64,000 bases of DNA from Macrostomum lignano. Lineage: Eukaryota. This document shows positions 4,004 to 63,194 of the stretch, piece after piece (position 1 is the stretch's first letter; every line of letters begins with the position of its first letter). Position numbers and translations under genes: made by a program. Where the stretch lies: the NCBI GenBank assembly GCA_002269645.1, contig NIVC01001256.1, positions 1 to 64,000 of the forward strand, written 5' to 3'. The notes beneath the pieces were generated by a model that was not told the origin of the DNA, did no database searches, and saw only the letters and a program-made list of their open reading frames with translations.

Positions 4004-4073
<70 letters not shown>

Positions 4074-4189
4074 GGCGGGCAGGCAGGCAGGCAGGCAGAC
4101 AGGCGGGCAGACAGGCAGGCAGGCAGGCAGGCGGGCAGGCAGGTAGGCAGGCAGGCAGGCAGGCGGGCAGGCAGGTAGGCAGGCAGGCA

Positions 4190-4243
<54 letters not shown>

Positions 4244-25000: not shown

Positions 25001-28000
25001 CACGTCTTCTACTTTGTCCAGCTGCTGCTTCTACCACCACTCTCAGCCACCTGCTCTCTACCATCACTATCATCTATCTACCCGCTCTCTACCACCACTC
25101 TCATCCACCTGCTCTCTGCCACCACTCTCATCTACCCACTCTCTACCACCAATTTCATCTACTCGCTCTCTACCACCACTCTCATCCACCTGCTCTCTGC
25201 CACCACTCTCATCTACGCACTCTCTACCACCAATTTCATCTACTCGCTCTCTACCACCACTCTCATCTAACCACTCTCTACCGCCACTCTCATTTATCTA
25301 CCCGCTCTCTACCACCACTCTCATCTACCCGCTCTCTACCACCACTCTCATCTACCCGCTCTCTACCACCACTCTCATTTATTTACCCGCTCTCTACCAC
25401 CACTCTCATTTATTTACCCGCTCTCTACCACCACTCTCATTTATCTACCCGCTCTCTGCCGCCACTCTCATCTACCCACTCTCTACCGCCACTCTCATTT
25501 ATCTACCCGCTCTCTACCACCACTCTCATCTACCCGCTCTCTACCATCACTATCATCTATCTACCCGCTCTCTTTCTCCACTCTCATCTATCTACCCGCT
25601 CTCTTTCTCCACTCTCATTTATCTACCCGCTCTCTATCTCCACTCTCATCTATCTACCCGCTCTCTGCCGCCACTCTCATTTATCTACCCGCTCTCTACC
25701 ACCACTCTCATTTATCTACCCGCTCTCTGCCGCCACTCTCATTTATCTACCCGCTCTCTACCGCCACTCTCATCTACCCGCTCTCTACCATCACTATCAT
25801 CTATCTACCCGCTCTCTACCGCCTCTCCTACCAATCTACCCGCTCTCTACCGCCTCTCCTACCAATCTACCAGCTCTCTACCGCCTCTCCTACCAATCTA
25901 CCCGCTCTCTACCGCCTCTCCTACCAATCTACCAGCTCTCTACCGCCTCTCCTACCAATCTACCCGCTCTCTACCGCCTCTCCTACCAATCTACCAGCTC
26001 TCTACGGACACTCACCGCTGGCACCGCCCCTCCCGCCCCCCAATTCCAGCCGAGCTCAGCCCGAACCAGTCCAGCCCGCGGATTTGTCCCGCCTTCTTTG
26101 ACGGCATCCGCTGCTGGCGGGCCGCCGCCAACGGCTCCACTGTCCGGCTGCCCTGCTACGAAGGTGAGGACTGCATGGCGTGCGGCGCGGGGATCTTGGG
26201 TCTGTGCTAGACTGGTACATGCACACAGATGATAGAGTTACTCCGCTCGGCATGACCGCTTAACTCCCCCTCACAAGGGCGACCTTGGGGGTTATCGCAA
26301 CTCTATGTATTCATTTGTGTACTAACCACTCTGAATCTGCTTAACTTGCATTCTGTAATGATGGCTACCCTACAATGAGAGGAGATAAGGTAAACAAAAG
26401 GTAATTAATAAACAAAGAAATTAAGAAAAACTATCAGGTGTCTTTGCCTAATTATTTACTCAAACTCATTCCCTGGGAGCGAATTTTTATCCACCATATT
26501 TTATTGAGCTCTCGTTTTTATCGAATTATTCTAAGTTCATTATTAACGCGACTCACGACTCACCTTTGACATCACCACGCCTTTGACATCACCACGCATC
26601 AAAGCATCTCACCGAAGACTCTGTTCTAAGAACCGTCGCATAAATTAATAAAACTCTTTCTCAGTAAAGACAACAAGCGTCATTTTCAGGCATTACAAAA
26701 TTTAATAAGCATCTGAACACGCTTTCCCGCTCACGTGCCTCTCTCCAAACATGAGAAGATGTTTTTGTTGTTGGAAGTCCCAAATTTCCAGTTTCGAACC
26801 ACGCGCAAAAGTGCAAAATCGGCAAAAATCCTCATGCAAAGCGTCGAATTCGCTATCTGGCACAATAAATGAGACACTGGCCCGCTCTCAGCTCGGGGGG
26901 GGGGGATTCACTCGATCCGCAAGTCCGACTTCCCCCGCTGCCGCCGGATTTTAACTGGAAATTTATAGCTGTATTTTGATTTCTAGATTTTGCTTTTTCT
27001 ATCTAGAATTCGACTATAACAAGGGAGGGGCGCAGCAGTCCAAGTGAATGCCAAAGTAATTTACCTGCCGTTTGCTAATCATTTACCTGCCGTTTGCCAG
27101 TCATTTACCTGCCGTTTGCTAGTCATTTACCTGCCGTTTGCCAGTAATTTACCTGCCGTTTGCCAGTAATTTACCTGCCGTTTGCTAGTCATTTACCTGC
27201 CGTTTGCCAGTAATTTACCTGCCGTTTGCCAGTAATTTACCTGCCGTTTGCCAGTCATTTACCTGCCGTTTGCCAGTCATTTACCTGCCGTTTGCCAGTA
27301 ATTTACCTGCCGTTTGCCAGTCATTTACCTGCCGTTTGCTAGTCATTTACCTGCCGTTTGCTAGTCATTTACCTGCCGTTTGCTAGTCATTTACCTGCCG
27401 TTTGCCAGTCATTTACCAGGCATTTGCCAGTAATGTACCAGCCATTTACCAGACATTAACCAGCCATTTACCAGACATTAGCCAGTCATTTACCAGCGAT
27501 TTGCCAGTCATTTACCATTCATTTATTTGTTAATCCGCCCATCCCGACGGACTCATCCACAGGCGCCGACACATTCGCCTTTCGGGTCTGCCACAGTTCG
27601 GGGCGCTGGCTGGGCCCGGACGGGCGGCCGGCGGCCAGCGCCGAGAACTCTTACTCCAACTACTCGGCCTGCATCACGCAGTTCTCGGCGGCCTTCGTCA
27701 AGAATAAATCCGTCAGGGAGATCTTTGTGAGGCCGATAAGCTGCGCCGCTGACTTGGAATAGAAGCATTGGTTCTTGTGTGACTGACAGCTGTAGCTTTG
27801 ATGTGATTGACAGCTGTAGCTCTGGTGTGATTGACAGCTGTAGCTTTGAAGTGATTGACAGCTGTAGCTTTGATGTGATTGACAGCTGTAGCTTTGATGT
27901 GATTGACAGCTGTAGCTTTGATGTGATTGACAGCTGTAGCTTTGGTGTGATTGACAGCTGTAGCTTTGGTGTGATTGACAGCTATAGCTTTGATATGATT

Positions 28001-31000
28001 GACAACTGTAGCTTTGAAGTGATTGACAGCTGTAGCTTTGATGTGATTGACAGCTGTAGCTCTGGTGTGATTGACAGCTGTAGCTTTGATGTGATTGACA
28101 GCTATAGCTTTGGTGTGATTGACAGCTGTAGCTTTGATGTGATTGACAGCTGTAGCTCTGAAGTGATTGACAGCTGTAGCTTTGGTGTGATTGACAGCTG
28201 TAGCTTTGATGTGATTGACAGCTGTAGCTTTGATGTGATTGACAGCTGTAGCTTTGATGTGATTGACAGCTGTAGCTTTGAAGTGATTGACAGCTGTAGC
28301 TCTGGTGTGATTGACAGCTGTAGCTTTGATGTGATTGACAGCTGTAGCATTGTGTGATTGACAGCTGTAGCTCTGAAGTGATTGACAGCTGTAGCTTTGG
28401 TGTGATTGACAGCTGTAGCTTTGAAGTGATTGACAGCTGTAGCTTTGTGTGATTGACAGCTGTAGCTTTGATGTGATTGACAGCTGTAGCTTTGAAGTGA
28501 TTGACAGCTGTAGCTCTGGTGTGATTGACAGCTGTAGCTTTGATGTGATTGACAGCTGTAGCATTGTGTGATTGACAGCTGTAGCTTTGAAGTGATTGAC
28601 AGCTGTAGCTCTGGTGTGATTGACAGCTGTAGCTCTGGTGTGATTGACAGCTGTAGCTTTGATGTGATTGACAGCTGTAGCTTTGGTGTGATTGACAGCT
28701 ATAGCTTTGGTGTGATTGACAGCTGTAGCTTTGGTGTGATTGACAGCTGTAGCATTGTGTGATTGACAGCTGTAGCTCTGAAGTGATTGACAGCTGTAGC
28801 TTTGGTGTGATTGACAGCTATAGCTTTGGTGTGATTGACAGCTGTAGCTTTGGTGTGATTGACAGCTGTAGCTTTGATGTGATTGACAGCTGTAGCTTTG
28901 ATGTGATTGACAGCTGTAGCTTTGATGTGATTGACAGCTGTAGCTTTGATGTGATTGACAGCTCTACGCATAGGTTTTGATAAAAGTAAAATAGGAAAGA
29001 TAAACCGTCTCGCGGTCCGCCTCCGCAGTTGATTGACATGGCCGTTCGAGTCAACGAAGTCGTGGAAATTGTCGGCGATATTCTCTCCTGCGTGTTTCTC
29101 GCCAGCGCAATTCTCATCTTCTTCCGCTGCAGGTGAGCTAATTAACTCGAGGAATTAATCACGGTAATTATCGGGGTGAAAGTTCGTGTCAATCATTGCG
29201 AATGGGTCGGAGCAATCATCAGAAATTGAGCAATCAGTATTCCACTTCCATCTCTGCCTCTCGTTTGCAATTTGTCCTTTGGTTATCATGTCGTGTCGTG
29301 TCGCTATCCACCTGACTGCGTACTTGTCGAACTTGCAGTCCATCAGTGGGTAGGCAATGAATGGCTGAACCAGGCAGTGCGAGCTCTCAGGGTTTATGGA
29401 CAGGCTGTGTACTCTGGGTAAGAAGCCAGGTATGTACATCAGGGAAGGAGTCTTAGAAAGGCTGTGTACTCTGCTTAATAAGCCAGGTATGTACATCAGG
29501 GAAGGAGTCTTAGAAAGGCTGTGTACTCTGGGTAATAAGCCGGGTATGTACATCAGGGAAGGAGTCTTAGGAAGGCTGTGTACGCTGAGGAAGAAGCCGG
29601 GTATGTACATCAGGGAAGGAGTCTTAGGAAGGCTGTGTACTCTGCGTAATAAGCCAGGTATGTACATCAGAGAAGGAGTCTTAGGAAGGCTGTGTACTCT
29701 GAGGAAGAAGCCGGGTATGTACATCAGGGAAGGAGTCTTAGGAAGGCTGTGTACTCTGAGGAAGAAGCCGGGTATGTACATCAGGGAAGGAGTCTTAGGA
29801 AGGCTGTGTACTCTGAGGAAGAAGCCGGTTATGTACATCAGGGAAGGAGTCTTAGGAGGGCTGTGTACTCTGAGGAAGAAGCCGGGTATGTACATCAGGG
29901 AAGGAGTCTTAGGAAGGCTGTGTACTCTGAGGAAGAAGCCGGGTATGTACATCAGGGAAGGAGTCTTAGGAGGGCTGTGTACTCTGAGGAAGAAGCCGGG
30001 TATGTACATCAGAGAAGGAGTCTTAGGAAGGCTGTGTACTCTGAGGAAGAAGCCGGGTATGTACATCAGGGAAGGAGTCTTAGGAAGGCTGTGTACTCTG
30101 AGGAAGAAGCCGGGTATGTACATCAGGGAAGGAGTCTTAGGAAGGCTGTGTACTCTGAGGAAGAAGCCGGGTATGTACATCAGGGAAGGAGTCTTAGGAA
30201 GGCTGTGTACGCTGAGGAAGAAGCCGGGTATGTACATCAGGGAAGGAGTCTTAGGAAGGCTGTGTACTCTGAGGAAGAAGCCGGGTATGTACATCAGGGA
30301 AGGAGTCTTAGGAAGGCTGTGTACTCTGAGGAAGAAGCCGGGTATGTACATCAGGGAAGGAGTCTTAGGAAGGCTGTGTACTCTGAGGAAGAAGCCGGGT
30401 ATGTACATCAGGGAAGGAGTCTTAGGAAGGCTGTGTACTCTGAGGAAGAAGCCGGGTATGTACATCAGGGAAGGAGTCTTAGGAAGGCTGTGTACATGTA
30501 CGTTGGAGAAGCCGAGAATGTACACCAGGGAAGGAATCTATCCTTAATAAATGTTTCATGCCATATCAGAATCGGTGCAGGGAACTATTAAACTACCTTT
30601 GATTGCAGCTGCCTCCGGAACCAGCGCACCAAGATTCACCGCAACCTATTTCTGGCAATGCTGGCTCAGACGCTGCTGCACTTGCTCCTGGCGAGTAGGG
30701 AGATCGTGCTGAGCAGGGCCACTGGCAGCCCGGCTGCTAGCGGCTTGAAGGCTCTGGTGAGAAGACTGTTCAACTGAACCGAAGTAGCATTCAGTAGTTG
30801 TTCAATGAAGAGTTCATTTGTTAGAAAGAGAATTTTTTACGTTCTAGTAAGCTTAGAATTGTAATTGTAATATATTAGTAGCATAAGACATTCAAGTTTC
30901 AAGGAGTTTCAAGACACGAAATTCTGCCAGAAGGTCGGATTTCTTTTCCATAAGCGCCAGTGTATTCAGTACAATCCTGTGCGCCAATCAGCACTGCGCC

Positions 31001-34000
31001 TCAGTGCAGCCTTGCCAAGCCTCCAAATTTCATCAGCACGTCGATCACATGTGTCTGCATCAGCTATGACTTCGTTGGTAACTGGCCTTCACTCAGGCGG
31101 AGCTTCTGGACCTTCAACAGGTGGCACCAGGTGACTATGGAAACCCTTTCCCCTTGGTAATTCGACGGGCAGAAAAAAGTAGTAAACTAATTAGTACGGA
31201 AAAGAGCAGAGCGATACACTGCCACGTGCTACTGCCACACTGCCAAATTCAGGGAATATGGGTAGTTAGTTTATTGATGCATTCAAACATAAACAAGTCA
31301 AACATTTTTTTACATTTTTGTCCTTCTTTGCTGAGTTAAAACTGTTTTAAAGAACACATTGGATGAGCCGTTCTGAGCCATTCTAAGCCACTCAAGCCTC
31401 TCCAAGCCTCTCTAAGCCACTCCAAGCCTCTCTAAGCCTCTCTAAGCCTCTCTAAGCCTCTCTAAGCCACTCCAAGCCTCTCTAAGCCTCTCTAAGCCAC
31501 TCAAGCCTCTCCAAGCCTCTCTAAGCCACTCAAGCCTCTCTAAGCCACTCCAAGCCTCTCTAAGCCACTCAAGCCTCTCCAAGCCTCTCCAAGCCTCTCT
31601 AAGCCTCTCTAAGCCACTCCAAGCCTCTCTAAGCCTCTCTAAGCCTCTCTAAGCCACTCCAAGCCTCTCTAAGCCTCTCTAAGCCACTCCAAGCCTCTCT
31701 AAGCCTCTCTAAGCCACTCAAGCCTCTCCAAGCCTCTCTAAGCCACTCCAAGCCTCTCTAAGCCTCTCTAAGCCTCTCTAAGCCACTCCAAGCCTCTCTA
31801 AGCCTCTCTAAGCCTCTCTAAGCCACTCCAAGCCTCTCTAAGCCTCTCTAAGCCTCTCTAAGCCACTCCAAGCCTCTCTAAGCCTCTCTAAGCCACTCAA
31901 GCCTCTCTAAGCCTCTCTAAGCCACTCAAGCCTCTCCAAGCCTCTCTAAGCCACTCCAAGCCTCTCTAAGCCTCTTTAAGCCACTCAAGCCTCTCCAAGC
32001 CTCTCTAAGCCACTCTTAGCCTCTCTAAGCCACTCAAGCCTCTCTAAGCCTCTCCAAGCCTCTCTAAGCCTCTCTAAGCCACTCAAGCCTCTCTAAGCCA
32101 CTCCAAGCCTCTCTAAGCCACTCAAGCCACTCCAAGCCTCTCCAAGCCTCTCTAAGCCTCTCTAAGCCACTCCAAGCCTCTCTAAGCCTCTCTAAGCCTC
32201 TCTAAGCCACTCCAAGCCTCTCTAAGCCTCTCTAAGCCACTCAAGCCTCTCCAAGCCTCTCTAAGCCACTCCAAGCCTCTCTAAGCCTCTCTAAGCCTCT
32301 CTAAGCCTCTCTAAGCCTCTCTAAGCCACTCCAAGCCTCTCTAAGCCTCTCTAAGCCTCTCTAAGCCACTCCAAGCCTCTCTAAGCCTCTCTAAGCCTCT
32401 CTAAGCCACTCCAAGCCTCTCTAAGCCTCTCTAAGCCTCTCTAAGCCACTCCAAGCCTCTCTAAGCCTCTCTAAGCCACTCAAGCCTCTCCAAGCCTCTC
32501 TAAGCCTCTCTAAGCCACTCAAGCCTCTCCAAGCCTCTCTAAGCCACTCCAAGCCTCTCTAAGCCTCTTTAAGCCACTCAAGCCTCTCCAAGCCTCTCTA
32601 AGCCACTCTTAGCCTCTCTAAGCCACTCAAGCCTCTCTAAGCCTCTCCAAGCCTCTCTAAGCCTCTCTAAGCCACTCAAGCCTCTCTAAGCCACTCCAAG
32701 CCTCTCTAAGCCACTCAAGCCTCTCCAAGCCTCTCCAAGCCTCTCTAAGCCTCTCTAAGCCACTCCAAGCCTCTCTAAGCCTCTCTAAGCCTCTCTAAGC
32801 CACTCCAAGCCTCTCTAAGCCTCTCTAAGCCACTCCAAGCCTCTCTAAGCCTCTCTAAGCCACTCAAGCCTCTCCAAGCCTCTCTAAGCCACTCCAAGCC
32901 TCTCTAAGCCTCTCTAAGCCTCTCTAAGCCACTCCAAGCCTCTCTAAGCCTCTCTAAGCCTCTCTAAGCCACTCCAAGCCTCTCTAAGCCTCTCTAAGCC
33001 TCTCTAAGCCACTCAAAGCCTCTCTAAGCCTCTCTAAGCCACTCAAGCCTCTCTAAGCCTCTCTAAGCCACTCAAGCCTCTCCAAGCCTCTCTAAGCCAC
33101 TCCAAGCCTCTCTAAGCCTCTTTAAGCCACTCAAGCCTCTCCAAGCCTCTCTAAGCCACTCTTAGCCTCTCTAAGCCACTCAAGCCTCTCTAAGCCTCTC
33201 CAAGCCTCTCTAAGCCTCTCTAAGCCACTCAAGCCTCTCTAAGCCACTCCAAGCCTCTCTAAGCCACTCAAGCCTCTCAAGCCTCTCCAAGCCTCTCTAA
33301 GCCTCTCTAAGCCACTCCAAGCCTCTCTAAGCCTCTCTAAGCCTCTCTAAGCCACTCCAAGCCTCTCTAAGCCTCTCTAAGCCACTCCAAGCCTCTCTAA
33401 GCCTCTCTAAGCCACTCAAGCCTCTCCAAGCCTCTCTAAGCCACTCCAAGCCTCTCTAAGCCTCTCTAAGCCTCTCTAAGCCACTCCAAGCCTCTCTAAG
33501 CCTCTCTAAGCCTCTCTAAGCCACTCCAAGCCTCTCTAAGCCTCTCTAAGCCTCTCTAAGCCACTCCAAGCCTCTCTAAGCCTCTCTAAGCCACTCAAGC
33601 CTCTCCAAGCCTCTCTAAGCCACTCCAAGCCTCTCTAAGCCTCTCTAAGCCTCTCTAAGCCTCTCTAAGCCTCTCTAAGCCACTCCAAGCCTCTCTAAGC
33701 CTCTCTAAGCCTCTCTAAGCCACTCCAAGCCTCTCTAAGCCTCTCTAAGCCTCTCTAAGCCACTCCAAGCCTCTCTAAGCCTCTCTAAGCCTCTCTAAGC
33801 CACTCCAAGCCTCTCTAAGCCTCTCTAAGCCACTCAAGCCTCTCCAAGCCTCTCTAAGCCACTCCAAGCCTCTCTAAGCCTCTTTAAGCCACTCAAGCCT
33901 CTCCAAGCCTCTCTAAGCCTCTCTTAGCCTCTCTAAGCCACTCAAGCCTCTCTAAGCCTCTCCAAGCCTCTCTAAGCCTCTCTAAGCCACTCAAGCCTCT

Positions 34001-37000
34001 CTAAGCCACTCCAAGCCTCTCTAAGCCACTCAAGCCTCTCCAAGCCTGTCCAAGCCTCTCTAAGCCTCTCTAAGCCACTCCAAGCCTCTCTAAGCCTCTC
34101 TAAGCCTCTCTAAGCCACTCTAAGCCTCTCTAAGCCTCTCTAAGCCACTCCAAGCCTCTCTAAGCCTCTCTAAGCCACTCAAGCCTCTCCAAGCCTCTCT
34201 AAGCCACTCCAAGCCTCTCTAAGCCTCTCTAAGCCTCTCTAAGCCACTCCAAGCCTCTCTAAGCCTCTCTAAGCCTCTCTAAGCCACTCCAAGCCTCTCT
34301 AAGCCTCTCTAAGCCTCTCTAAGCCACTCCAAGCCTCTCTAAGCCTCTCTAAGCCACTCAAGCCTCTCCAAGCCTCTCTAAGCCACTCCAAGCCTCTCTA
34401 AGCCTCTCTAAGCCTCTCTAAGCCTCTCTAAGCCACTCCAAGCCTCTCTAAGCCTCTCTAAGCCACTCAAGCCTCTCTAAGCCACTCCAAGCCTCTCTAA
34501 GCCTCTCTAAGCCACTCTAAGCCTCTCCAAGCCTCTCCAAGCCTCTCTAAGCCTCTCTAAGCCACTCCAAGCCTCTCTAAGCCTCTCTAAGCCTCTCTAA
34601 GCCTCTCTAAGCCACTCTAAGCCTCTCTAAGCCTCTCTAAGCCACTCCAAGCCTCTCTAAGCCTCTCTAAGCCACTCAAGCCTCTCCAAGCCTCTCTAAG
34701 CCACTCCAAGCCTCTCTAAGCCTCTCTAAGCCTCTCTAAGCCACTCCAAGCCTCTCTAAGCCTCTCTAAGCCTCTCTAAGCCACTCCAAGCCTCTCTAAG
34801 CCTCTCTAAGCCTCTCTAAGCCACTCCAAGCCTCTCTAAGCCTCTCTAAGCCACTCAAGCCTCTCCAAGCCTCTCTAAGCCACTCCAAGCCTCTCTAAGC
34901 CTCTCTAAGCCTCTCTAAGCCTCTCTAAGCCACTCCAAGCCTCTATAAGCCTCTCTAAGCCACTCAAGCCTCTCCAAGCCTCTCTAAGCCACTACAAGCC
35001 TCTCTAAGCCACTCTAAGCCTCTCCAAGCCTCTCCAAGCCTCTCTAAGCCTCTCTAAGCCACTCAAGCCTCTCCAAGCCTCTCTAAGCCACTCCAAGCCT
35101 CTCTAAGCCACTCTAAGCCTCTCTAAGCCTCTCCAAGCCTCTCCAAGCCTCTCTAAGCCTCTCTAAGCCACTCAAGCCTCTCTAAGCCTCTCTAAGCCAC
35201 TCAAGCCTCTCCAAGCCTCTCTAAGCCACTCCAAGCCTCTCCAAGCCTCTCTAAGCCTCTCTAAGCCACTCCAAGCCTCTCTAAGCCTCTCTAAGCCTCT
35301 CTAAGACTCTCCAAGCCTCTCCAAGCCTCTCTAAGCCTCTCTAAGCCACTCCAAGCCTCTCTAAGCCTCTCTAAGCCTCTCTAAGCCACTCCAAGCCTCT
35401 CTAAGCCTCTCTAAGCCACTCAAGCCTCTCCAAGCCTCTCTAAGCTACTCTAAGCTACTCTAAGCTACTCTAAGCTACTCTAAGCCTCTCTAAGCCTCTC
35501 TAAGCCTCTCTAAGCCACTCCAAGCCTCTCTAAGCCTCTCTAAGCTACTCAAGCCTCTCTAAGCCTCTCTAAGCCACTCAAGCCTCTCCAAGCCTCCCTA
35601 AGCCACTCCAAGCCTCTCTAAGCCTCTTTAAGCCACTCAAGCCTCTCCAAGCCTCTCTAAGCCACTCTTAGCCTCTCTAAGCTACTCAAGCCTCTCTAAG
35701 CCTCTCTAAGCCACTCAAGCCTCTCCAAGCCTCTCTAAGCCACTCCAAGCCTCTCTAAGCCTCTTTAAGCCACTCAAGCCTCTCCAAGCCTCTCTAAGCC
35801 ACTCTTAGCCTCTCTAAGCCACTCAAGCCTCTCTAAGCCTCTCTAAGCCACTCAAGCCTCTCCAAGCCTCTCTAAGCCACTCCAAGCCTCTCTAAGCCAC
35901 TCTAAGCCTCTCTAAGCCTCTCCAAGCCTCTCCAAGCCTCTCTAAGCCTCTCTAAGCCACTCAAGCCTCTCTAAGCCTCTCTAAGCCACTCAAGCCTCTC
36001 CAAGCCTCTCTAAGCCACTCCAAGCCTCTCCAAGCCTCTCTAAGCCTCTCTAAGCCACTCCAAGCCTCTCTAAGCCTCTCTAAGCCTCTCTAAGACTCTC
36101 CAAGCCTCTCCAAGCCTCTCTAAGCCTCTCTAAGCCACTCCAAGCCTCTCTAAGCCTCTCTAAGCCTCTCTAAGCCACTCCAAGCCTCTCTAAGCCTCTC
36201 TAAGCCACTCAAGCCTCTCCAAGCCTCTCTAAGCTACTCTAAGCTCTCTAAGCTACTCTAAGCTACTCTAAGCCTCTCTAAGCCTCTCTAAGCCTCTCTA
36301 AGCCACTCCAAGCCTCTCTAAGCCTCTCTAAGCTACTCAAGCCTCTCTAAGCCTCTCTAAGCCACTCAAGCCTCTCCAAGCCTCCTAAGCCACTCCAAGC
36401 CTCTCTAAGCCTCTTAAGCCACTCAAGCCTCTCCAAGCCTCTCTAAGCCACTCTTAGCCTCTCTAAGCTACTCAAGCCTCTCTAAGCCTCTCTAAGCCAC
36501 TCAAGCCTCTCCAAGCCTCTCTAAGCCACTCCAAGCCTCTCTAAGCCTCTTTAAGCCACTCAAGCCTCTCCAAGCCTCTCTAAGCCACTCTTAGCCTCTC
36601 TAAGCCACTCAAGCCTCTCTAAGCCTCTCCAAGCCTCTCTAAGCCTCTCTAAGCCACTCAAGCCTCTCTAAGCCACTCCAAGCCTCTCTAAGCCACTCAA
36701 GCCTCTCCAAGCCTCTCCAAGCCTCTCTAAGCCTCTCTAAGCCACTCCAAGCCTCTCTAAGCCTCTCTAAGCCTCTCTAAGCCACTCTAAGCCTCTCTAA
36801 GCCTCTCTAAGCCACTCCAAGCCTCTCTAAGCCTCTCTAAGCCACTCAAGCCTCTCCAAGCCTCTCTAAGCCACTCCAAGCCTCTCTAAGCCTCTCTAAG
36901 CCTCTCTAAGCCACTCCAAGCCTCTCTAAGCCTCTCTAAGCCTCTCTAAGCCACTCCAAGCCTCTCTAAGCCTCTCTAAGCCTCTCTAAGCCACTCCAAG

Positions 37001-40000
37001 CCTCTCTAAGCCTCTCTAAGCCACTCAAGCCTCTCAAGCCTCTCTAAGCCACTCCAAGCCTCTCTAAGCCTCTCTAAGCCTCTCTAAGCCTCTCTAAGCC
37101 TCTCTAAGCCACTCCAAGCCTCTCTAAGCCTCTCTAAGCCTCTCTAAGCCACTCCAAGCCTCTCTAAGCCTCTCTAAGCCTCTCTAAGCCACTCCAAGCC
37201 TCTCTAAGCCTCTCTAAGCCTCTCTAAGCCACTCCAAGCCTCTCTAAGCCTCTCTAAGCCACTCAAGCCTCTCCAAGCCTCTCTAAGCCACTCCAAGCCT
37301 CTCTAAGCCTCTTTAAGCCACTCAAGCCTCTCCAAGCCTCTCTAAGCCTCTCTTAGCCTCTCTAAGCCACTCAAGCCTCTCTAAGCCTCTCCAAGCCTCT
37401 CTAAGCCTCTCTAAGCCACTCAAGCCTCTCTAAGCCACTCCAAGCCTCTCTAAGCCACTCTAAGCCTCTCTAAGCCTCTCCAAGCCTCTCTAAGCCTCTC
37501 TAAGCCACTCCAAGCCTCTCTAAGCCTCTCTAAGCCTTTCTAAGCCACTCTAAGCCTCTCTAAGCCTCTCTAAGCCACTCCAAGCCTCTCTAAGCCTCTC
37601 TAAGCCACTCCAAGCCTCTCTAAGTCTCTCTAAGCCTCTCTAAGCCACTCCAAGCCTCTCTAAGCCTCTCTAAGCCACTCAAGCCTCTCCAAGCCTCTCT
37701 AAGCCACTCCAAGCCTCTCTAAGCCTCTCTAAGCCTCTCTAAGCCACTCCAAGCCTCTCTAAGCCTCTCTAAGCCTCTCTAAGCCACTCCAAGCCTCTCT
37801 AAGCCTCTCTAAGCCTCTCTAAGCCACTCCAAGCCTCTCTAAGCCTCTCTAAGCCACTCAAGCCTCTCCAAGCCTCTCTAAGCCACTCCAAGCCTCTCTA
37901 AGTCTCTCTAAGCCTCTCTACGCCACTCCAAGCCTCTCTAAGCCTCTCTAAGCCTCTCTAAGCCACTCCAAGCCTCTCTAAGCCTCTCTAAGCCTCTCTA
38001 AGCCACTCCAAGCCTCTCTAAGCCTCTCTAAGCCACTCAAGCCTCTCCAAGCCTCTCTAAGCCACTCCAAGCCTCTCTAAGCCTCTTTAAGCCACTCAAG
38101 CCTCTCCAAGCCTCTCTAAGCCTCTCTTAGCCTCTCTAAGCCACTCAAGCCTCTCTAAGCCTCTCCAAGCCTCTCTAAGCCTCTCTAAGCCACTCAAGCC
38201 TCTCTAAGCCACTCCAAGCCTCTCTAAGCCACTCAAGCCTCTCCAAGCCTCTCCAAGCCTCTCTAAGCCTCTCTAAGCCACTCCAAGCCTCTCTAAGCCT
38301 CTCTAAGCCTCTCTAAGCCACTCTAAGCCTCTCTAAGCCTCTCTAAGCCACTCCAAGCCTCTCTAAGCCTCTCTAAGCCACTCAAGCCTCTCCAAGCCTC
38401 TCTAAGCCACTCCAAGCCTCTCTAAGCCTCTCTAAGCCTCTCTAAGCCACTCCAAGCCTCTCTAAGCCTCTCTAAGCCTCTCTAAGCCACTCCAAGCCTC
38501 TCTAAGCCTCTCTAAGCCTCTCTAAGCCACTCCAAGCCTCTCTAAGCCTCTCTAAGCCACTCAAGCCTCTCCAAGCCTCTCTAAGCCACTCCAAGCCTCT
38601 CTAAGCCTCTCTAAGCCTCTCTAAGCCTCTCTAAGCCACTCCAAGCCTCTCTAAGCCTCTCTAAGCCACTCAAGCCTCTCTAAGCCACTCCAAGCCTCTC
38701 TAAGCCTCTCTAAGCCACTCTAAGTTTCTCCAAGCCTCTCCAAGCCTCTCTAAGCCTCTCTAAGCCACTCCAAGCCTCTCTAAGCCTCTCTAAGCCTCTC
38801 TAAGCCACTCTAAGCCTCTCTAAGCCTCTCTAAGCCACTCCAAGCCTCTCTAAGCCTCTCTAAGCCACTCAAGCCTCTCCAAGCCTCTCTAAGCCACTCC
38901 AAGCCTCTCTAAGCCTCTCTAAGCCTCTCTAAGCCACTCCAAGCCTCTCTAAGCCTCTCTAAGCCTCTCTAAGCCACTCCAAGCCTCTCTAAGCCTCTCT
39001 AAGCCTCTCTAAGCCACTCCAAGCCTCTCTAAGCCTCTCTAAGCCACTCAAGCCTCTCCAAGCCTCTCTAAGCCACTCCAAGCCTCTCTAAGCCTCTCTA
39101 AGCCTCTCTAAGCCTCTCTAAGCCACTCCAAGCCTCTCTAAGCCTCTCTAAGCCACTCAAGCCTCTCCAAGCCTCTCTAAGCCACTCAAGCCTCTCTAAG
39201 CCACTCTAAGCCTCTCAAGCCTCTCCAAGCCTCTCTAAGCCTCTCTAAGCCACTCAAGCCTCTCCAAGCCTCTCTAAGCCACTCCAAGCCTCTCTAAGCC
39301 ACTCTAAGCCTCTCTAAGCCTCTCCAAGCCTCTCCAAGCCTCTCTAAGCCTCTCTAAGCCACTCCAAGCCTCTCTAAGCCTCTCTAAGCCACTCAAGCCT
39401 CTCCAAGCCTCTCTAAGCCACTCCAAGCCTCTCTAAGCCTCTTTAAGCCACTCAAGCCTCTCCAAGCCTCTCTAAGCCACTCTTAGCCTCTCTAAGCCAC
39501 TCAAGCCTCTCTAAGCCTCTCTAAGCCTCTCTAAGCCACTCCAAGCCTCTCTAAGCCTCTCTAAGCCACTCAAGCCTCTCCAAGCCTCTCTAAGCCACTC
39601 CAAGCCTCTCCAAGCCTCTCTAAGCCTCTCTAAGCCACTCCAAGCCTCTCTAAGCCTCTCTAAGCCACTCCAAGCCTCTCTAAGCCACTCCAAGCCTCTC
39701 CAAGCCTCTCTAAGCCTCTCTAAGCCACTCCAAGCCTCTCTAAGCCTCTCTAAGCCTCTCTAAGCCACTCCAAGCCTCTCTAAGCCTCTCTAAGCCTCTC
39801 TAAGCCACTCCAAGCCTCTCTAAGCCTCTCTAAGCCACTCAAGCCTCTCCAAGCCTCTCTAAGCCACTCCAAGCCTCTCTAAGCCTCTCTAAGCCTCTCT
39901 AAGCCTCTCTAAGCCTCTCTAAGCCACTCCAAGCCTCTCTAAGCCTCTCTAAGCCTCTCTAAGCCACTCCAAGCCTCTCTAAGCCTCTCTAAGCCTCTCT

Positions 40001-43000: not shown

Positions 43001-46000
43001 CACTCCAAGCCTCTCTAAGCCTCTTTAAGCCACTCAAGCCTCTCCAAGCCTCTCTAAGCCACTCTTAGCCTCTCTAAGCCACTCAAGCCTCTCTAAGCCT
43101 CTCTAAGCCTCTCTAAGCCACTCCAAGCCTCTCTAAGCCTCTCTAAGCCACTCAAGCCTCTCCAAGCCTCTCTAAGCCACTCCAAGCCTCTCCAAGCCTC
43201 TCTAAGCCTCTCTAAGCCACTCCAAGCCTCTCTAAGCCTCTCTAAGCCACTCCAAGCCTCTCTAAGCCACTCCAAGCCTCTCCAAGCCTCTCTAAGCCTC
43301 TCTAAGCCACTCCAAGCCTCTCTAAGCCTCTCTAAGCCTCTCTAAGCCACTCCAAGCCTCTCTAAGCCTCTCTAAGCCTCTCTAAGCCACTCCAAGCCTC
43401 TCTAAGCCTCTCTAAGCCACTCAAGCCTCTCCAAGCCTCTCTAAGCCACTCCAAGCCTCTCTAAGCCTCTCTAAGCCTCTCTAAGCCTCTCTAAGCCTCT
43501 CTAAGCCACTCCAAGCCTCTCTAAGCCTCTCTAAGCCTCTCTAAGCCACTCCAAGCCTCTCTAAGCCTCTCTAAGCCTCTCTAAGCCACTCCAAGCCTCT
43601 CTAAGCCTCTCTAAGCCACTCAAGCCTCTCCAAGCCTCTCTAAGCTACTCTAAGCTACTCTAAGCTACTCTAAGCTACTCTAAGCCTCTCTAAGCCTCTC
43701 TAAGCCTCTCTAAGCCACTCCAAGCCTCTCTAAGCCTCTCTAAGCCACTCAAGCCTCTCTAAGCCTCTCTAAGCCACTCAAGCCTCTCCAAGCCTCTCTA
43801 AGCCACTCCAAGCCTCTCTAAGCCTCTTTAAGCCACTCAAGCCTCTCCAAGCCTCTCTAAGCCACTCTTAGCCTCTCTAAGCCACTCAAGCCTCTCTAAG
43901 CCTCTCCAAGCCTCTCTAAGCCTCTCTAAGCCACTCAAGCCTCTCTAAGCCACTCCAAGCCTCTCTAAGCCACTCAAGCCTCTCCAAGCCTCTCCAAGCC
44001 TCTCTAAGCCTCTCTAAGCCACTCCAAGCCTCTCTAAGCCTCTCTAAGCCTCTCTAAGCCACTCCAAGCCTCTCTAAGCCTCTCTAAGCCACTCCAAGCC
44101 TCTCTAAGCCTCTCTAAGCCACTCAAGCCTCTCCAAGCCTCTCTAAGCCACTCCAAGCCTCTCTAAGCCTCTCTAAGCCTCTCTAAGCCACTCCAAGCCT
44201 CTCTAAGCCTCTCTAAGCCTCTCTAAGCCACTCCAAGCCTCTCTAAGCCTCTCTAAGCCTCTCTAAGCCACTCCAAGCCTCTCTAAGCCTCTCTAAGCCA
44301 CTCAAGCCTCTCCAAGCCTCTCTAAGCCACTCCAAGCCTCTCTAAGCCTCTCTAAGCCTCTCTAAGCCTCTCTAAGCCTCTCTAAGCCACTCCAAGCCTC
44401 TCTAAGCCTCTCTAAGCCTCTCTAAGCCACTCCAAGCCTCTCTAAGCCTCTCTAAGCCTCTCTAAGCCACTCCAAGCCTCTCTAAGCCTCTCTAAGCCTC
44501 TCTAAGCCACTCCAAGCCTCTCTAAGCCTCTCTAAGCCACTCAAGCCTCTCCAAGCCTCTCTAAGCCACTCCAAGCCTCTCTAAGCCTCTTTAAGCCACT
44601 CAAGCCTCTCCAAGCCTCTCTAAGCCTCTCTTAGCCTCTCTAAGCCACTCAAGCCTCTCTAAGCCTCTCCAAGCCTCTCTAAGCCTCTCTAAGCCACTCA
44701 AGCCTCTCTAAGCCACTCCAAGCCTCTCTAAGCCACTCAAGCCTCTCCAAGCCTCTCCAAGCCTCTCTAAGCCTCTCTAAGCCACTCCAAGCCTCTCTAA
44801 GCCTCTCTAAGCCTTTCTAAGCCACTCTAAGCCTCTCTAAGCCTCTCTAAGCCACTCCAAGCCTCTCTAAGCCTCTCTAAGCCACTCCAAGCCTCTCTAA
44901 GTCTCTCTAAGCCTCTCTAAGCCACTCCAAGCCTCTCTAAGCCTCTCTAAGCCACTCAAGCCTCTCCAAGCCTCTCTAAGCCACTCCAAGCCTCTCTAAG
45001 CCTCTCTAAGCCTCTCTAAGCCACTCCAAGCCTCTCTAAGCCTCCCTAAGCCTCTCTAAGCCACTCCAAGCCTCTCTAAGCCTCTCTAAGCCTCTCTAAG
45101 CCACTCCAAGCCTCTCTAAGCCTCTCTAAGCCACTCAAGCCTCTCCAAGCCTCTCTAAGCCACTCCAAGCCTCTCCAAGCCTCTCTAAGCCTCTCTAAGC
45201 CACTCAAGCCTCTCCAAGCCTCTCTAAGCCACTCCAAGCCTCTCTAAGCCACTCCAAGCCTCTCTAAGCCTCTCTAAGCCTCTCTAAGCCACTCCAAGCC
45301 TCTCTAAGCCTCTCTAAGCCTCTCTAAGCCTCTCCAAGCCTCTCTAAGCCTCTCTAAGCCTCTCTAAGCCACTCCAAGCCTCTCTAAGCCTCTCTAAGCC
45401 TCTCTAAGCCACTCCAAGCCTCTCTAAGCCTCTCTAAGCCACTCAAGCCTCTCCAAGCCTCTCTAAGCTACTCTAAGCTACTCTAAGCTACTCTAAGCTA
45501 CTCTAAGCTACTCTAAGCTACTCTAAGCTACTCTAAGCTACTCTAAGCTACTCTAAGCTACTCTAAGCTACTCTAAGCTACTCTAAGCTACTCTAAGCCT
45601 CTCTAAGCCTCTCTAAGCCACTCCAAGCCTCTCTAAGCCTCTCTAAGCCTCTCTAAGCCACTCCAAGCCTCTCTAAGCCTCTCTAAGCCACTCAAGCCTC
45701 TCCAAGCCTCTCTAAGCCACTCCAAGCCTCTCTAAGCCTCTCTAAGCCTCTCTAAGCCTCTCTAAGCCTCTCTAAGCCACTCCAAGCCTCTCTAAGCCTC
45801 TCTAAGCCTCTCTAAGCCACTCCAAGCCTCTCTAAGCCTCTCTAAGCCTCTCTAAGCCACTCCAAGCCTCTCTAAGCCTCTCTAAGCCTCTCTAAGCCAC
45901 TCCAAGCCTCTCTAAGCCTCTCTAAGCCTCTCTAAGCCACTCAAGCCTCTCCAAGCCTCTCTAAGCTACTCTAAGCTACTCTAAGCTACTCTAAGCTACT

Positions 46001-49000
46001 CTAAGCTACTCTAAGCTACTCTAAGCTACTCTAAGCTACTCTAAGCTACTCTAAGCTACTCTAAGCTACTCTAAGCTACTCTAAGCCTCTCTAAGCCTCT
46101 CTAAGCCTCTCTAAGCCTCTCTAAGCCACTCTAAGCCTCTCTAAGCCACTCCAAGCCTCTATAGGCCATTCTAAGCCTCTCTAAGCCACTCTAAGCCTCT
46201 CTAAGCCACTCTAAGCCTCTCTAAGCCACTCTAAGCTACTCTAAGCTACTCTAAGCTACTCTAAGCTACTCTAAGCTACTCTAAGCTACTCTAAGCTACT
46301 CTAAGCTACTCTAAGCTACTCTAAGCTACTCTAAGCTACTCTAAGCTACTCTAAGCTACTCTAAGCTACTCTAAGCTACTCTAAGCTACTCTAAGCTACT
46401 CTAAGCTACTCTAAGCCTCTCTAAGCCTCTCTAAGCCTCTCTAAGCCTCTCTAAGCCACTCTAAGCCTCTCTAAGCCACTCCAAGCCTCTATAGGCCATT
46501 CTAAGCCTCTCTAAGCCACTCTAAGCCTCTCTAAGCCTCTCTAAGCCTCTCTAAGCCACTCCAAGCCTCTCTAAGCCTCTCTAAGCCACTCAAGCCTCTC
46601 CAAGCCTCTCTAAGCCACTCCAAGCCTCTCTAAGCCTCTTTAAGCCACTCAAGCCTCTCCAAGCCTCTCTAAGCCACTCTTAGCCTCTCTAAGCCACTCA
46701 AGCCTCTCTAAGCCTCTCTAAGCCTCTCTAAGCCACTCCAAGCCTCTCTAAGCCTCTCTAAGCCACTCAAGCCTCTCCAAGCCTCTCTAAGCCACTCCAA
46801 GCCTCTCCAAGCCTCTCTAAGCCTCTCTAAGCCACTCCAAGCCTCTCCAAGCCTCTCTAAGCCACTCCAAGCCTCTCTAAGCCACTCCAAGCCTCTCCAA
46901 GCCTCTCTAAGCCTCTCTAAGCCACTCCAAGCCTCTCTAAGCCTCTCTAAGCCTCTCTAAGCCACTCCAAGCCTCTCTAAGCCTCTCTAAGCCTCTCTAA
47001 GCCACTCCAAGCCTCTCTAAGCCTCTCTAAGCCACTCAAGCCTCTCCAAGCCTCTCTAAGCCACTCCAAGCCTCTCTAAGCCTCTCTAAGCCTCTCTAAG
47101 CCTCTCTAAGCCTCTCTAAGCCACTCCAAGCCTCTCTAAGCCTCTCTAAGCCTCTCTAAGCCACTCCAAGCCTCTCTAAGCCTCTCTAAGCCTCTCTAAG
47201 CCACTCCAAGCCTCTCTAAGCCTCTCTAAGCCACTCAAGCCTCTCCAAGCCTCTCTAAGCTACTCTAAGCTACTCTAAGCTACTCTAAGCTACTCTAAGC
47301 CTCTCTAAGCCTCTCTAAGCCTCTCTAAGCCACTCCAAGCCTCTCTAAGCCTCTCTAAGCCACTCAAGCCTCTCTAAGCCTCTCTAAGCCACTCAAGCCT
47401 CTCCAAGCCTCTCTAAGCCACTCCAAGCCTCTCTAAGCCTCTTTAAGCCACTCAAGCCTCTCCAAGCCTCTCTAAGCCACTCTTAGCCTCTCTAAGCCAC
47501 TCAAGCCTCTCTAAGCCTCTCCAAGCCTCTCTAAGCCTCTCTAAGCCACTCAAGCCTCTCTAAGCCACTCCAAGCCTCTCTAAGCCACTCAAGCCTCTCC
47601 AAGCCTCTCCAAGCCTCTCTAAGCCTCTCTAAGCCACTCCAAGCCTCTCTAAGCCTCTCTAAGCCTCTCTAAGCCACTCCAAGCCTCTCTAAGCCTCTCT
47701 AAGCCACTCCAAGCCTCTCTAAGCCTCTCTAAGCCACTCAAGCCTCTCCAAGCCTCTCTAAGCCACTCCAAGCCTCTCTAAGCCTCTCTAAGCCTCTCTA
47801 AGCCACTCCAAGCCTCTCTAAGCCTCTCTAAGCCTCTCTAAGCCACTCCAAGCCTCTCTAAGCCTCTCTAAGCCTCTCTAAGCCACTCCAAGCCTCTCTA
47901 AGCCTCTCTAAGCCACTCAAGCCTCTCCAAGCCTCTCTAAGCCACTCCAAGCCTCTCTAAGCCTCTCTAAGCCTCTCTAAGCCTCTCTAAGCCTCTCTAA
48001 GCCACTCCAAGCCTCTCTAAGCCTCTCTAAGCCTCTCTAAGCCACTCCAAGCCTCTCTAAGCCTCTCTAAGCCTCTCTAAGCCACTCCAAGCCTCTCTAA
48101 GCCTCTCTAAGCCTCTCTAAGCCACTCCAAGCCTCTCTAAGCCTCTCTAAGCCACTCAAGCCTCTCCAAGCCTCTCTAAGCCACTCCAAGCCTCTCTAAG
48201 CCTCTTTAAGCCACTCAAGCCTCTCCAAGCCTCTCTAAGCCTCTCTTAGCCTCTCTAAGCCACTCAAGCCTCTCTAAGCCTCTCCAAGCCTCTCTAAGCC
48301 TCTCTAAGCCACTCAAGCCTCTCTAAGCCACTCCAAGCCTCTCTAAGCCACTCAAGCCTCTCCAAGCCTCTCCAAGCCTCTCTAAGCCTCTCTAAGCCAC
48401 TCCAAGCCTCTCTAAGCCTCTCTAAGCCTTTCTAAGCCACTCTAAGCCTCTCTAAGCCTCTCTAAGCCACTCCAAGCCTCTCTAAGCCTCTCTAAGCCAC
48501 TCCAAGCCTCTCTAAGTCTCTCTAAGCCTCTCTAAGCCACTCCAAGCCTCTCTAAGCCTCTCTAAGCCACTCAAGCCTCTCCAAGCCTCTCTAAGCCACT
48601 CCAAGCCTCTCTAAGCCTCTCTAAGCCTCTCTAAGCCACTCCAAGCCTCTCTAAGCCTCTCTAAGCCTCTCTAAGCCACTCCAAGCCTCTCTAAGCCTCT
48701 CTAAGCCTCTCTAAGCCACTCCAAGCCTCTCTAAGCCTCTCTAAGCCACTCAAGCCTCTCCAAGCCTCTCTAAGCCACTCCAAGCCTCTCCAAGCCTCTC
48801 TAAGCCTCTCTAAGCCACTCAAGCCTCTCCAAGCCTCTCTAAGCCACTCCAAGCCTCTCTAAGCCACTCCAAGCCTCTCTAAGCCTCTCTAAGCCTCTCT
48901 AAGCCACTCCAAGCCTCTCTAAGCCTCTCTAAGCCTCTCTAAGCCTCTCCAAGCCTCTCTAAGCCTCTCTAAGCCTCTCTAAGCCTCTCCAAGCCTCTCT

Positions 49001-52000
49001 AAGCCTCTCTAAGCCTCTCTAAGCCACTCCAAGCCTCTCTAAGCCTCTCTAAGCCACTCAAGCCTCTCCAAGCCTCTCTAAGCTACTCTAAGCTACTCTA
49101 AGCTACTCTAAGCTACTCTAAGCTACTCTAAGCTACTCTAAGCTACTCTAAGCTACTCTAAGCTACTCTAAGCTACTCTAAGCTACTCTAAGCTACTCTA
49201 AGCTACTCTAAGCCTCTCTAAGCCTCTCTAAGCCACTCCAAGCCTCTCTAAGCCTCTCTAAGCCTCTCTAAGCCACTCCAAGCCTCTCTAAGCCTCTCTA
49301 AGCCACTCAAGCCTCTCCAAGCCTCTCTAAGCCACTCCAAGCCTCTCTAAGCCTCTCTAAGCCTCTCTAAGCCTCTCTAAGCCTCTCTAAGCCACTCCAA
49401 GCCTCTCTAAGCCTCTCTAAGCCTCTCTAAGCCACTCCAAGCCTCTCTAAGCCTCTCTAAGCCTCTCTAAGCCACTCCAAGCCTCTCTAAGCCTCTCTAA
49501 GCCTCTCTAAGCCACTCCAAGCCTCTCTAAGCCTCTCTAAGCCTCTCTAAGCCACTCAAGCCTCTCCAAGCCTCTCTAAGCTACTCTAAGCTACTCTAAG
49601 CTACTCTAAGCTACTCTAAGCTACTCTAAGCTACTCTAAGCTACTCTAAGCTACTCTAAGCTACTCTAAGCTACTCTAAGCTACTCTAAGCTACTCTAAG
49701 CCTCTCTAAGCCTCTCTAAGCCTCTCTAAGCCTCTCTAAGCCACTCTAAGCCTCTCTAAGCCACTCCAAGCCTCTATAGGCCATTCTAAGCCTCTCTAAG
49801 CCACTCTAAGCCTCTCTAAGCCACTCTAAGCCTCTCTAAGCCACTCTAAGCTACTCTAAGCTACTCTAAGCTACTCTAAGCTACTCTAAGCTACTCTAAG
49901 CTACTCTAAGCTACTCTAAGCTACTCTAAGCTACTCTAAGCTACTCTAAGCTACTCTAAGCTACTCTAAGCTACTCTAAGCTACTCTAAGCTACTCTAAG
50001 CTACTCTAAGCCTCTCTAAGCCTCTCTAAGCCTCTCTAAGCCTCTCTAAGCCACTCTAAGCCTCTCTAAGCCACTCCAAGCCTCTATAGGCCATTCTAAG
50101 CCTCTCTAAGCCACTCTAAGCCTCTCTAAGCCTCTCTAAGCCTCTCTAAGCCACTCTAAGCTACTCTAAGCTACTCTAAGCTACTCTAAGCTACTCTAAG
50201 CTACTCTAAGCTACTCTAAGCCTTTCTAAGCCTCTCTAAGACTCTCTAAGCCTTTCTAAGCCTCTCTAAGCCTTTCTAAGCCTCTCTAAGCCTCTCTAAG
50301 CCTCTCTAAGCCTCTCTAAGCCTCTCTAAGCCTCTCTAAGCCTTTCTAAGCCTCTCTAAGCTTCTCTAAGCCTTTCTAAGACTCTCTAAGACTCTCTAAG
50401 AAATATAAATCATTCTAGGCCACTCAAACGCACCCAATATATGTGCAATCCTCCTTTTTTGACGCGAATTCGAATTGAGAATAAATCGGCACTAGAAGCC
50501 CACGACAAGTGAGTATGAATTTATTATGAAGAAAAAATTTGCATATTCAATCTAGTATAAATGCTTTGCTCGGATTCCACAGCCACTGAGCCAGTCCAAT
50601 GGCAGCTGCAATATGGCGCCTACCCGACCCGGTTTGCCGGGGAGGCCGCTCACTCCCTTGCGGACAGCTGTTTTATTGATTTGCGCGAGTGGACGAGACG
50701 GCTAAGACTGCTTTAAACCCAGAGGCTAAATAGAATAGAGGGCCCGCCGATTACCATTTTGCTGGCGGGTGGCCGGGTTGGGGGGGGGGCAAGTCCCACT
50801 TTAATGGCAGATTCACTTCACCGGCTGCGTTAATTAGAGTTCTGCAGGCTGCTCACGATGTCCAGATCGGCAGATCCGGGATCTCTGCAGAATTCGCCTA
50901 CCTCCCTTGGGGACTTGGGGGGAATACTGTGTAGTACTTGGGTACACTTTTTCCCTTCAATCATGATAGTTTGGAATTAGGCATCAGGATGGATCGCTAT
51001 TCCCTGTCAAGGAAGCTGTCGTTGAAAAAAGCGATAAGCGGGAACGCCGCCATTCTTCCGAGCCCCTGGGTCGTCTGGTCATTCAGTCCATCCGTCATTT
51101 TCAAACTACCGAAACAGTTTTCTATGTGCTATAATGTACTATCTCTCTCGCGTGTCTACAAACTTAAATTATAAACTACTAAAAAACCGCAACCCAACAG
51201 CCGTATCTCTGCATTCTGCTCAAGTGCATCTGGGAAACCACGCGAACCTCCATCTTCGCGTGGATGCTGGCCGAGGGGATTAATATTCACGATAGGATCG
51301 CGGTCACCGTGTTCCAGACCAACACCGGAATGTGGCGCAACTACCTGCTGGGATATGGTGAGTCCTACGGGTGGCTCTTGATGCTGGTCTTGATGCAGTG
51401 AGTCCTGCGGGTGGCTCCTGATGCTGCTCTGGGATGCAGTGAGTCCTGCGGGTGGCTCCTGATGCTGCTCTGGGATGCAGTGAGTCCTGGGTGGCTCCTG
51501 ATGCTGTTCTTAGATGCAGTGAGTCCTCCTGGGTGGCTCCTGATGCTGGTCTTGATGCAGTGAGTCCTGCTGGTTGGCTCCTGATGCTGGTCTTGGATGC
51601 AGTGAGTCCTGGTTGGCGCCTGATGCTGGTCTTTGATGCGGTGAGTCCTGAGTGGCGCTTGATGGTGGTCCTGGATGCGGTGAGTCCTGAGTGGCGCTTG
51701 ATGGTGGTCCTGGATGCGGTGAGTCCTGAGTGGCGCTTGATGGTGGTCCTGGATGCGGTGAGTCCTGAGTGGCGCCTGTGAGTCCTGAGTGGCGCTTGAT
51801 GGTGGTCCTGGATGCGGTGAGTCCTGAGTGGCGCTTGATGCTGGTCCTGGATGCGGTGCGCCACGTGTGACTCCTGGGTCCTGATGGTGCTTTTGGATGC
51901 GGTCAGTCCTGAGGGGTTCTATCGGGAGCTCCGGAATGCGGTGAGTCCTAAATGATTCTCATTCGGCATCCCAGTTTCCCAGTTTGCCCTGGTGCATCCC

Positions 52001-63156: not shown

Positions 63157-63194
63157 CTGGGGCGGGAGCGGTTTGGTTCGGTCCAGTTGATTCT

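Follow-up and report, generated by a model that had tools for sequence, protein, structure and literature searches.

The closest described object to the locus analyzed here is the 30-mer variable number tandem repeat (VNTR) in intron 3 of human CACNA1C (PMC11118589). That array is 5.7 kb long at the median and can extend to 13–61 kb; it is composed of few unit variants in a stereotyped order, contains large internal duplications that have been ascribed to unequal exchange, and descends from a single-copy ancestral 30-mer (PMC11118589). In the Drosophila Y-loop genes kl-3, kl-5, and ORY, simple tandem DNA dominates introns that are transcribed for mRNA (PMC6508621, PMC11207136). At the level of a whole genome, 15% of the flatworm Macrostomum lignano consists of simple plus tandem repeats, and its introns average 1.1–1.4 kb (PMC5730564). 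Here we examine a 64-kb stretch of that genome (contig NIVC01001256.1, positions 1 to 64,000, called the window below), in which a gene resembling those for PDF receptors, members of the class-B G protein-coupled receptors (GPCRs), carries a 19-kb array of a 10-bp unit in the intron between the exons for transmembrane segments 2 and 3 (TM2 and TM3). We think that this is probably an intronic tandem array grown in situ, a VNTR or "private satellite," lodged in an intron that is ancient and conserved, within an intact gene.

A first-pass annotation of this DNA had claimed that 93% of a 20.4-kb intron is one simple satellite. The array is real and the observation is confirmed: 19,019 of the 20,444 nt of the intron (93.0%) belong to a single array, which Tandem Repeats Finder reports with a period of 10, 1919.6 copies, 87% matches, and a score of 27821 (Table 1). 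It lies wholly inside the intron of an intact gene, with unique sequence between both of its ends and the canonical splice sites. The intron that holds it is about 15–18 times as long as the mean M. lignano intron, and the array accounts for 70% of the recovered primary transcript (19,019/27,129 nt). The length is that of this one assembly.

Cut at each AAG, the array yields 1,888 units. The commonest, AAGCCTCTCT, is present in 1,036 exact copies; the variant AAGCCACTCC follows with 288, AAGCCTCTCC with 173, the 9-mer AAGCCACTC with 160, and AAGCTACTCT with 108, the last in runs that are clustered, in a letter-coded map of the units, in the 3′ third of the array. Together these five variants account for 1,765 of the 1,888 units; the consensus is strong, the variants are few, and the unit exceeds 6 bp. 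On the sense strand the array is 42% C and 10% G, with 66.5% pyrimidine and a GC skew of −0.61; a probe complementary to its sense transcript would have the form (AGAGAGGCTT)n. Outside the array, all five main variants are absent from both strands of the window, and a literature search for the 10-mer, in either strand, returned primer coincidences only. With about 430 stop codons in each frame, the array is without coding potential. The unique flanks of the intron contain no notable open reading frame (ORF) and neither an Rfam family nor a tRNA, and in the 5′ flank no ORF matches a known family; the idea that the intron conceals a gene or an RNA was rejected on these grounds.

The locus resembles the CACNA1C VNTR in several respects. 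First, both are multi-kilobase arrays that lie in introns of intact genes with neuronal relevance, euchromatic in the human case and probably so, from the gene-dense surroundings, in the flatworm. Second, both consist of one consensus unit with limited variants in a stereotyped order and contain large internal tandem duplications. Third, the size range of the human array brackets the 19 kb of the flatworm array. The human array came from local single-copy sequence, and a local birth may also apply to the flatworm array, whose edges fit it. The analogy is not complete, however. The flatworm unit is 10 bp, as against 30 bp in the human gene, and the flatworm array fills 93% of its intron, but the human intron is very large and its array occupies little of it.

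The receptor gene was recovered as a model of 10 exons, with nine introns that are all GT-AG, and no stop, frameshift, or broken splice site is found across the 10 exons. The four 3′-most introns measure 96, 89, 147, and 241 nt when the ninth exon is ended at 52740, in agreement with the 89–241 bp given earlier. The spliced product has 428 residues; it matches the Pfam families 7tm_2 (PF00002; 1.4e-43, residues 91–341) and HRM (PF02793; 3.2e-09), and it aligns over TM1–TM7 to the solved calcitonin, PTH, and CRF receptors. Its best named relatives are the PDF receptors of ant, mussel, and scorpion, at 35–38% identity in the search (35–39% in a multiple alignment) and E values of 2e-58 to 2e-46; in this one-directional search, receptors of the CGRP/calcitonin type lie far behind, at E values of about 1e-15. 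A homology search with the two joined exons only (102 amino acids) gave no match, whereas the full model did match. The model lacks the initial coding exon or exons, which could not be located in the window. On these matches the gene is an intact PDF-receptor-like class-B GPCR, and the label that the first-pass annotation had given it is fair.

Within the family the receptor stands somewhat apart. It has the 7tm_2 and HRM domains of PDF receptors and other class B1 GPCRs and an exon structure that matches the mussel gene one-to-one, but several of the conserved class-B motifs diverge: WILSACR is found where PDF receptors have WILEGPR (residues ~254–260), and EGINIH replaces EGxYLH (residues ~190–195). 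These changes are also present in the database copies of the M. lignano protein. Judged from its sequence, the receptor is a divergent family member, and the motif changes do not represent a lesion of this copy.

Two further features of the gene were seen at its ends. A pyrimidine-rich array of a 31-bp unit (25030–26005) stands directly upstream of the HRM exon; it is 77% pyrimidine, contains no GT, and is open in three frames. At the other end, reading through the donor at 52741 (52741–52842) gives an alternative C-terminus, EVRRELSTGIAVDQSE... followed by a stop, which also fits the class-B motif EV(R/Q)xEL. The form spliced at 52741, EVQATLSRLL..., is the version in the database proteins. 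The read-through may represent intron retention or an alternative tail.

The link between the exons on either side of the array is central to placing the satellite in this gene. As had been proposed from the sequence, the TM2 and TM3 exons join in phase: the join is phase 0, is translated ...SGLKAL/PYLCILL..., and uses canonical sites (CTG/gtgaga and caacag/CC). The junction is also used by two annotated M. lignano proteins. The top match of the receptor is one of these, a 296-residue protein (UniRef A0A1I8G7Q9, 99% identity), and the other is its cluster mate A0A1I8F328; both cross the proposed junction unbroken (...SSLKAL-PYLCILL...) and continue into the same downstream exons. The database copies differ from the window at 3 of the 296 residues (T/A, G/S, and V/I), two in exon 4 and one downstream, and therefore come from another allele, homeolog, or assembly. 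Both are truncated at the N-terminus and start within TM2, the first of them from MLAQ onward. The second of them ends in ...TAGQPPRPTVAASCASF and not in ...TAGVQSPAD, as the window does at 53180–53212, which suggests an indel or another last-exon end in another gene copy.

The position of the intron is also shared outside flatworms. The ortholog in the freshwater mussel Sinanodonta woodiana has an intron at the same codon boundary and in the same phase (...YDT/PVLC..., gtaaga...tgtag; 3,311 nt), and nine of the nine intron positions of the receptor model coincide with exon boundaries of that ortholog. A multiple alignment is well conserved on either side of the TM2/TM3 join. These comparisons place the satellite in what is evidently an old, conserved intron of a gene with intact frame and splice sites.

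Table 1. Positions of the receptor gene, of the parts of its satellite-filled intron, and of other genes in the window.
Feature	Position	Strand	Remarks
PDF-receptor-like gene, recovered part	26084..53212	+	10 exons, 9 introns
Exons 1–5 of recovered model	26084?-26163, 27563-27726, 29029-29132, 30609-30756, 51201-51357	+	
Exons 6–10 of recovered model	52005-52074, 52171-52240, 52330-52415, 52563-52740, 52982-53212	+	
Exon encoding TM2 (CLRNQRTKIHRNLFLAMLAQ...SGLKAL)	30609..30756	+	Ends on codon boundary, donor GCTCTG/gtgaga; aligns to TM2 of solved calcitonin receptors
Phase-0 GT-AG intron, 20,444 nt	30757..51200	+	Gene model; position common to mussel ortholog
Unique 5′ part of intron, 608 nt	30757..31364	+	
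Degenerate leading units GAGCCGTTCT GAGCCATTCT AAGCCACTC AAGC	31365..31397	+	Read from sequence
Left copy of seed-like direct repeat, CCATTCTAAGCCACTCAAGC	31378..31397	+	
10-bp tandem array	31382..50400	+	19,019 bp, ~1,920 head-to-tail units, C-rich and G-poor on sense strand
Penultimate super-repeat block, ~3.6 kb	42950..46396	+	3 differences from block 3,615 bp downstream
Last super-repeat block	46565..50011	+	Near-identical partner of 42950-46396
Right copy of seed-like direct repeat, TCATTCTAGGCCACTCAAAC	50410..50429	+	17/20 bases match 31378-31397
Unique 3′ part of intron, 771 nt	50430..51200	+	Ends in acceptor ...aacccaacag/
Exon encoding TM3 (PYLCILLKCIWETTRTSIFAWMLAEGINIH...LGYG)	51201..51357	+	Carries conserved TM3 cysteine; begins CCG TAT CTC TGC
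Oxysterol-binding-protein (OSBP) gene	2828-5276	-	
Nuclear-receptor gene, two zf-C4 exons	57453-58346	-	
WD40-coding ORF	62808-63194	-	

The internal order of the array bears both on how it arose and on how far its length can be trusted. In the unit map, long motifs of tens of units recur, and the order of the variants is non-periodic over all 19 kb. The dominant super-period, found from the spacing of long k-mers and from diagonals of the unit string, is ~3.6 kb, with lags of 3615, 3580, and 3582 bp and roughly five blocks. Over ~3.4 kb the two blocks nearest the 3′ end show 99.9% identity, with one unbroken exact match of 1,811 bp, and an earlier pair of blocks at lag 3580/3582 is near-identical across ~2 kb. 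Because of the near-identity of the two terminal blocks, the array looks to have expanded recently in ~3.6-kb blocks. It also looks as though it was born from a local seed, because the units at its edges are degenerate, because the edges form a 17/20 direct repeat, and because the unit is confined to this intron within the window.

The repeat could, in principle, be real while the assembly is wrong about its length of 19 kb or about which flanks belong together, if 3.6-kb blocks were miscounted or homeologs were joined in this neopolyploid genome. Terminal blocks with 99.9% identity over ~3.4 kb are the hardest case for block copy number, and assembly of the M. lignano genome is known to be hampered by simple repeats and duplicated chromosomes (PMC5730564). 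However, the rich, non-periodic variant order over 19 kb is not that of a collapsed or padded monotone. Moreover, the flanks carry the right consecutive exons in the right order, strand, and phase, and the differences from the database protein fall on both sides of the intron, which gives no sign of a chimera. An artifact of this kind thus seems improbable.

Tandem repeats are a common feature of the surrounding DNA. The window contains 33 tandem arrays that cover 50.6% of its length, and 29.7% outside the big array. In the receptor gene itself, the five long introns consist of tandem repeats to 33, 91, 77, 93, and 77%, with units of 22, 24, 57, 10, and 39 bp that are all different, and the four short introns contain no tandem repeat. 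The arrays in the long introns often come to within 50–70 nt of a splice site. An array is present in the mussel PDFR-like ortholog as well: a 31-bp unit in 266 copies with 92% matches extends over 8.2 kb (CM101000.1, 15114–23359) and fills 86% of the 9.5-kb intron between the TM1 and TM2 exons, the neighbor of the intron that is inflated in the flatworm. Intron inflation is therefore not flatworm-specific. The array studied here thus fits the intronic minisatellite load of M. lignano and lophotrochozoans, in that every long intron of the gene bears its own private array and the mussel ortholog has one too, but it differs in extent: the array is ~16 times as long as the next largest in the window (1.4 kb), in an intron well beyond the species mean.

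The splice-signal content of the array depends strongly on the strand. GT occurs 8 times on the sense strand, where 472 are expected from base composition, and 623 times on the antisense strand. GTRAG and AGGT are absent from both strands. Among possible acceptors, CAG is found 0 times in sense and once in antisense, and TAG 23 times in sense and 1,355 times in antisense; AAG, a disfavored acceptor form, is found 1,895 times in sense and 49 times in antisense. The nine genuine acceptors of the gene are all YAG, eight of them CAG. Because donors are lacking on the sense strand, no cryptic exon would be definable within the array. Without AGGT there are no recursive-splice sites, and recursive splicing through the array was rejected on this count of zero. 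With neither donors nor AGGT, the intron would have to be excised whole, in a single step that uses its unique ends.

This property is not shared by the sibling arrays. The neighboring 39-, 57-, 24-, and 22-bp intronic arrays carry 80–108 GT per kb on the sense strand, and these values, together with GTGAGT in the neighbors, rule out a general rule by which intronic arrays avoid sense donors. The 39-bp array (51358–51858) starts at the first intron base after the TM3 exon, and each of its units begins with GTGAGT; the 5′ splice site is copied ~12 times in tandem (25.9 GTRAG/kb). The second donor of this array, if used, would meet an in-frame TGA.

The sense RNA is predicted to fold far less stably than shuffled sequence. 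A 300-nt sample gives −12.6 kcal/mol versus −37.2 kcal/mol for dinucleotide shuffles (z = +5.9), and 200 of the 200 shuffles fold better than the sample. By this modeling, the array transcript is an open, single-stranded, CU-rich polymer, and the excised intron would be, as was stated at the outset from the letters alone, a large CU-rich RNA. A C-rich, G-poor orientation of the nascent RNA disfavors R-loops.

Such an RNA raises the possibility that the array has a function: it could delay transcription as a timer, mark a chromatin boundary, or gather PTB/Heph-like or poly(C)-binding proteins as a platform or sink. In that sense it would be a small autosomal counterpart of the Y-loops. The predicted 19-kb unstructured polymer is rich in CUCUCU, a motif class bound by PTB, and it would dominate the primary transcript of the gene, as noted above. 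The PTB homolog Heph is found at satellite-bearing Y-loops and is needed for production of kl-5 mRNA (PMC6508621). As in the Y-loops, simple tandem DNA dominates an intron that is transcribed for mRNA, and the flatworm RNA would be, on paper, an ideal PTB-type ligand, the class of protein implicated there. The differences are nevertheless large. The flatworm intron is 20 kb, in contrast to hundreds of kilobases to megabases (more than 1000 times a typical intron) in the Y-loops; it lies in a gene-dense region, not on a heterochromatic Y chromosome; and the repeat units are unrelated in sequence. Y-loop genes are further marked by lampbrush loops and by a prolonged, staged transcription program with dedicated RNA-binding factors. 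The parallel with the Drosophila Y fertility genes that was drawn in the first-pass annotation is thus an analogy only, as the intron is ~100 times smaller (20 kb versus megabases, PMC6508621) and of the features that define the Y-loops the dominance of simple satellite is shared but the scale is not.

Two related suggestions fare no better. The DNA had been called heterochromatin-like, but the window holds at least five genes, the 10-mer is found nowhere else in it, and arrays of several hundred base pairs to kilobases occupy every long receptor intron and about 30% of the remaining window. So far as sequence can show, this gene-dense setting argues against heterochromatin. A role for array length in circadian timing had also been raised. 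RNA polymerase II (Pol II) elongates at ~1.5–4 kb/min; at this assumed rate 20 kb adds only ~5–14 min, and nothing here ties the flatworm PDF-receptor-like gene to an oscillator, so that the proposal is speculation. More generally, the recent block duplication and the heterogeneous variant domains speak for ongoing turnover and not for a conserved length. Further, a different array is present in every long intron here and an unrelated array in another intron of the mussel gene, which makes repeat-prone introns the common factor. A function of the array as a timer, binding platform, or boundary therefore seems very unlikely.

A different explanation for the tolerance of so long an array is that this copy of the gene is a decaying or silenced duplicate, homeologous or allelic, which bears a disruptive 19-kb insertion since the receptor is supplied from other copies. 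Expression or splicing of this copy might then be poor even though its frame is intact. In M. lignano databases there are at least two further near-identical versions of the protein, with three substitutions and, in one, a different C-terminus. The species is a neopolyploid with 180–312 Mb of duplicated sequence, according to passages in the genome literature (PMC5730564; PMC10733133, PMC5704211), and the real acceptor of the 20-kb intron has a weak, A/C-rich upstream tract. Weak pyrimidine tracts are, however, typical of all nine acceptors of the gene. Moreover, none of the 10 exons shows a lesion, the protein departs from the database copies at just 3 of 296 residues, and it retains conserved class-B motifs. 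Decay or silencing of this copy is thus unlikely.

Growth in situ of an intronic array accounts best for these observations. A short local seed (...CCATTCTAAGCCACTCAAGC...) would have begun slipping or duplicating as a 10-bp unit, and unequal exchange or gene conversion would then have enlarged the array on scales from 10 bp through motifs of tens of units to ~3.6-kb blocks. Most likely the product is a passenger, neutral or of slight cost, and not a regulatory device; it looks like the extreme tail of a genome-wide growth of repeats in introns. Its tolerance may have three reasons. First, this genome fills introns with arrays generally. Second, the transcribed strand would offer the spliceosome almost nothing, with the intron removed in a single step. 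Third, the transcript is predicted to be unstructured, C-rich, and G-poor, which would disfavor R-loops. The anatomy, the conserved junction, the intact reading frame, the repeat-rich context, and the signal counts are observed; the mode of growth, neutrality, and inertness in splicing as the cause of tolerance are what we infer.

Several points weigh against this account. The void of splice signals follows automatically from the sequence of the unit and is thus no proof of selection. Sibling intronic arrays carry GT, and even GTGAGT, and there is accordingly no general rule of inertness. An assembler error in copy number would also yield near-identical 3.6-kb blocks. In a stronger form of the argument from splicing, the near-absence of splice signals, together with the unstructured, R-loop-averse, CUCUCU-rich RNA, would be no accident of the unit but the mark of a filter: in this repeat-prone genome, an array within a gene could reach tens of kilobases only if the spliceosome cannot see it in the sense orientation. 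The RNA might additionally act as a PTB-like sink or a minutes-scale delay. We regard this form as quite doubtful.

Other parts of the window show the same abundance of tandem DNA. At least five genes are present: a GWT1-like ORF, OSBP, the GPCR, a nuclear receptor, and WD40. Neither Rfam families nor tRNAs were found in the window. In the OSBP gene, a (CAGG/CAGA)n array (3967–4352) lies between exons, and an in-frame array of a 21-bp unit (4976–5237) is open and contiguous with the OSBP-coding ORF. The best match in M. lignano databases to the OSBP ORF at 2828–3493 is just 51% identical. The intron between the two zf-C4 exons of the nuclear-receptor gene is almost all a 13-bp array (57799–58056). 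Finally, a 30-bp array (63197–64000; at least 26.8 copies, 98% matches) adjoins the WD40 ORF and runs off the end of the window.

For annotators, the locus is a warning that repeat-filled introns can split or truncate gene models; the gene models here appear to be truncated in this way, with both database proteins starting inside TM2. For the genome, it documents the known high tandem-repeat load of Macrostomum and not a new mechanism. If the assembled length is right, it provides a case, resolved at the sequence level, of an intact neuronal receptor gene in which one simple repeat accounts for ~70% of the primary transcript, in a flatworm capable of transgenesis and thus tractable for studying how Pol II and the spliceosome handle long intronic arrays. 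The locus should also be useful for asking whether a repeat is limited in its expansion by its orientation and by the splice signals that it contains. If only arrays that the spliceosome does not see can reach such lengths, the introns of Macrostomum would serve as a natural experiment on which sequence rules allow gigantic introns to be tolerated.

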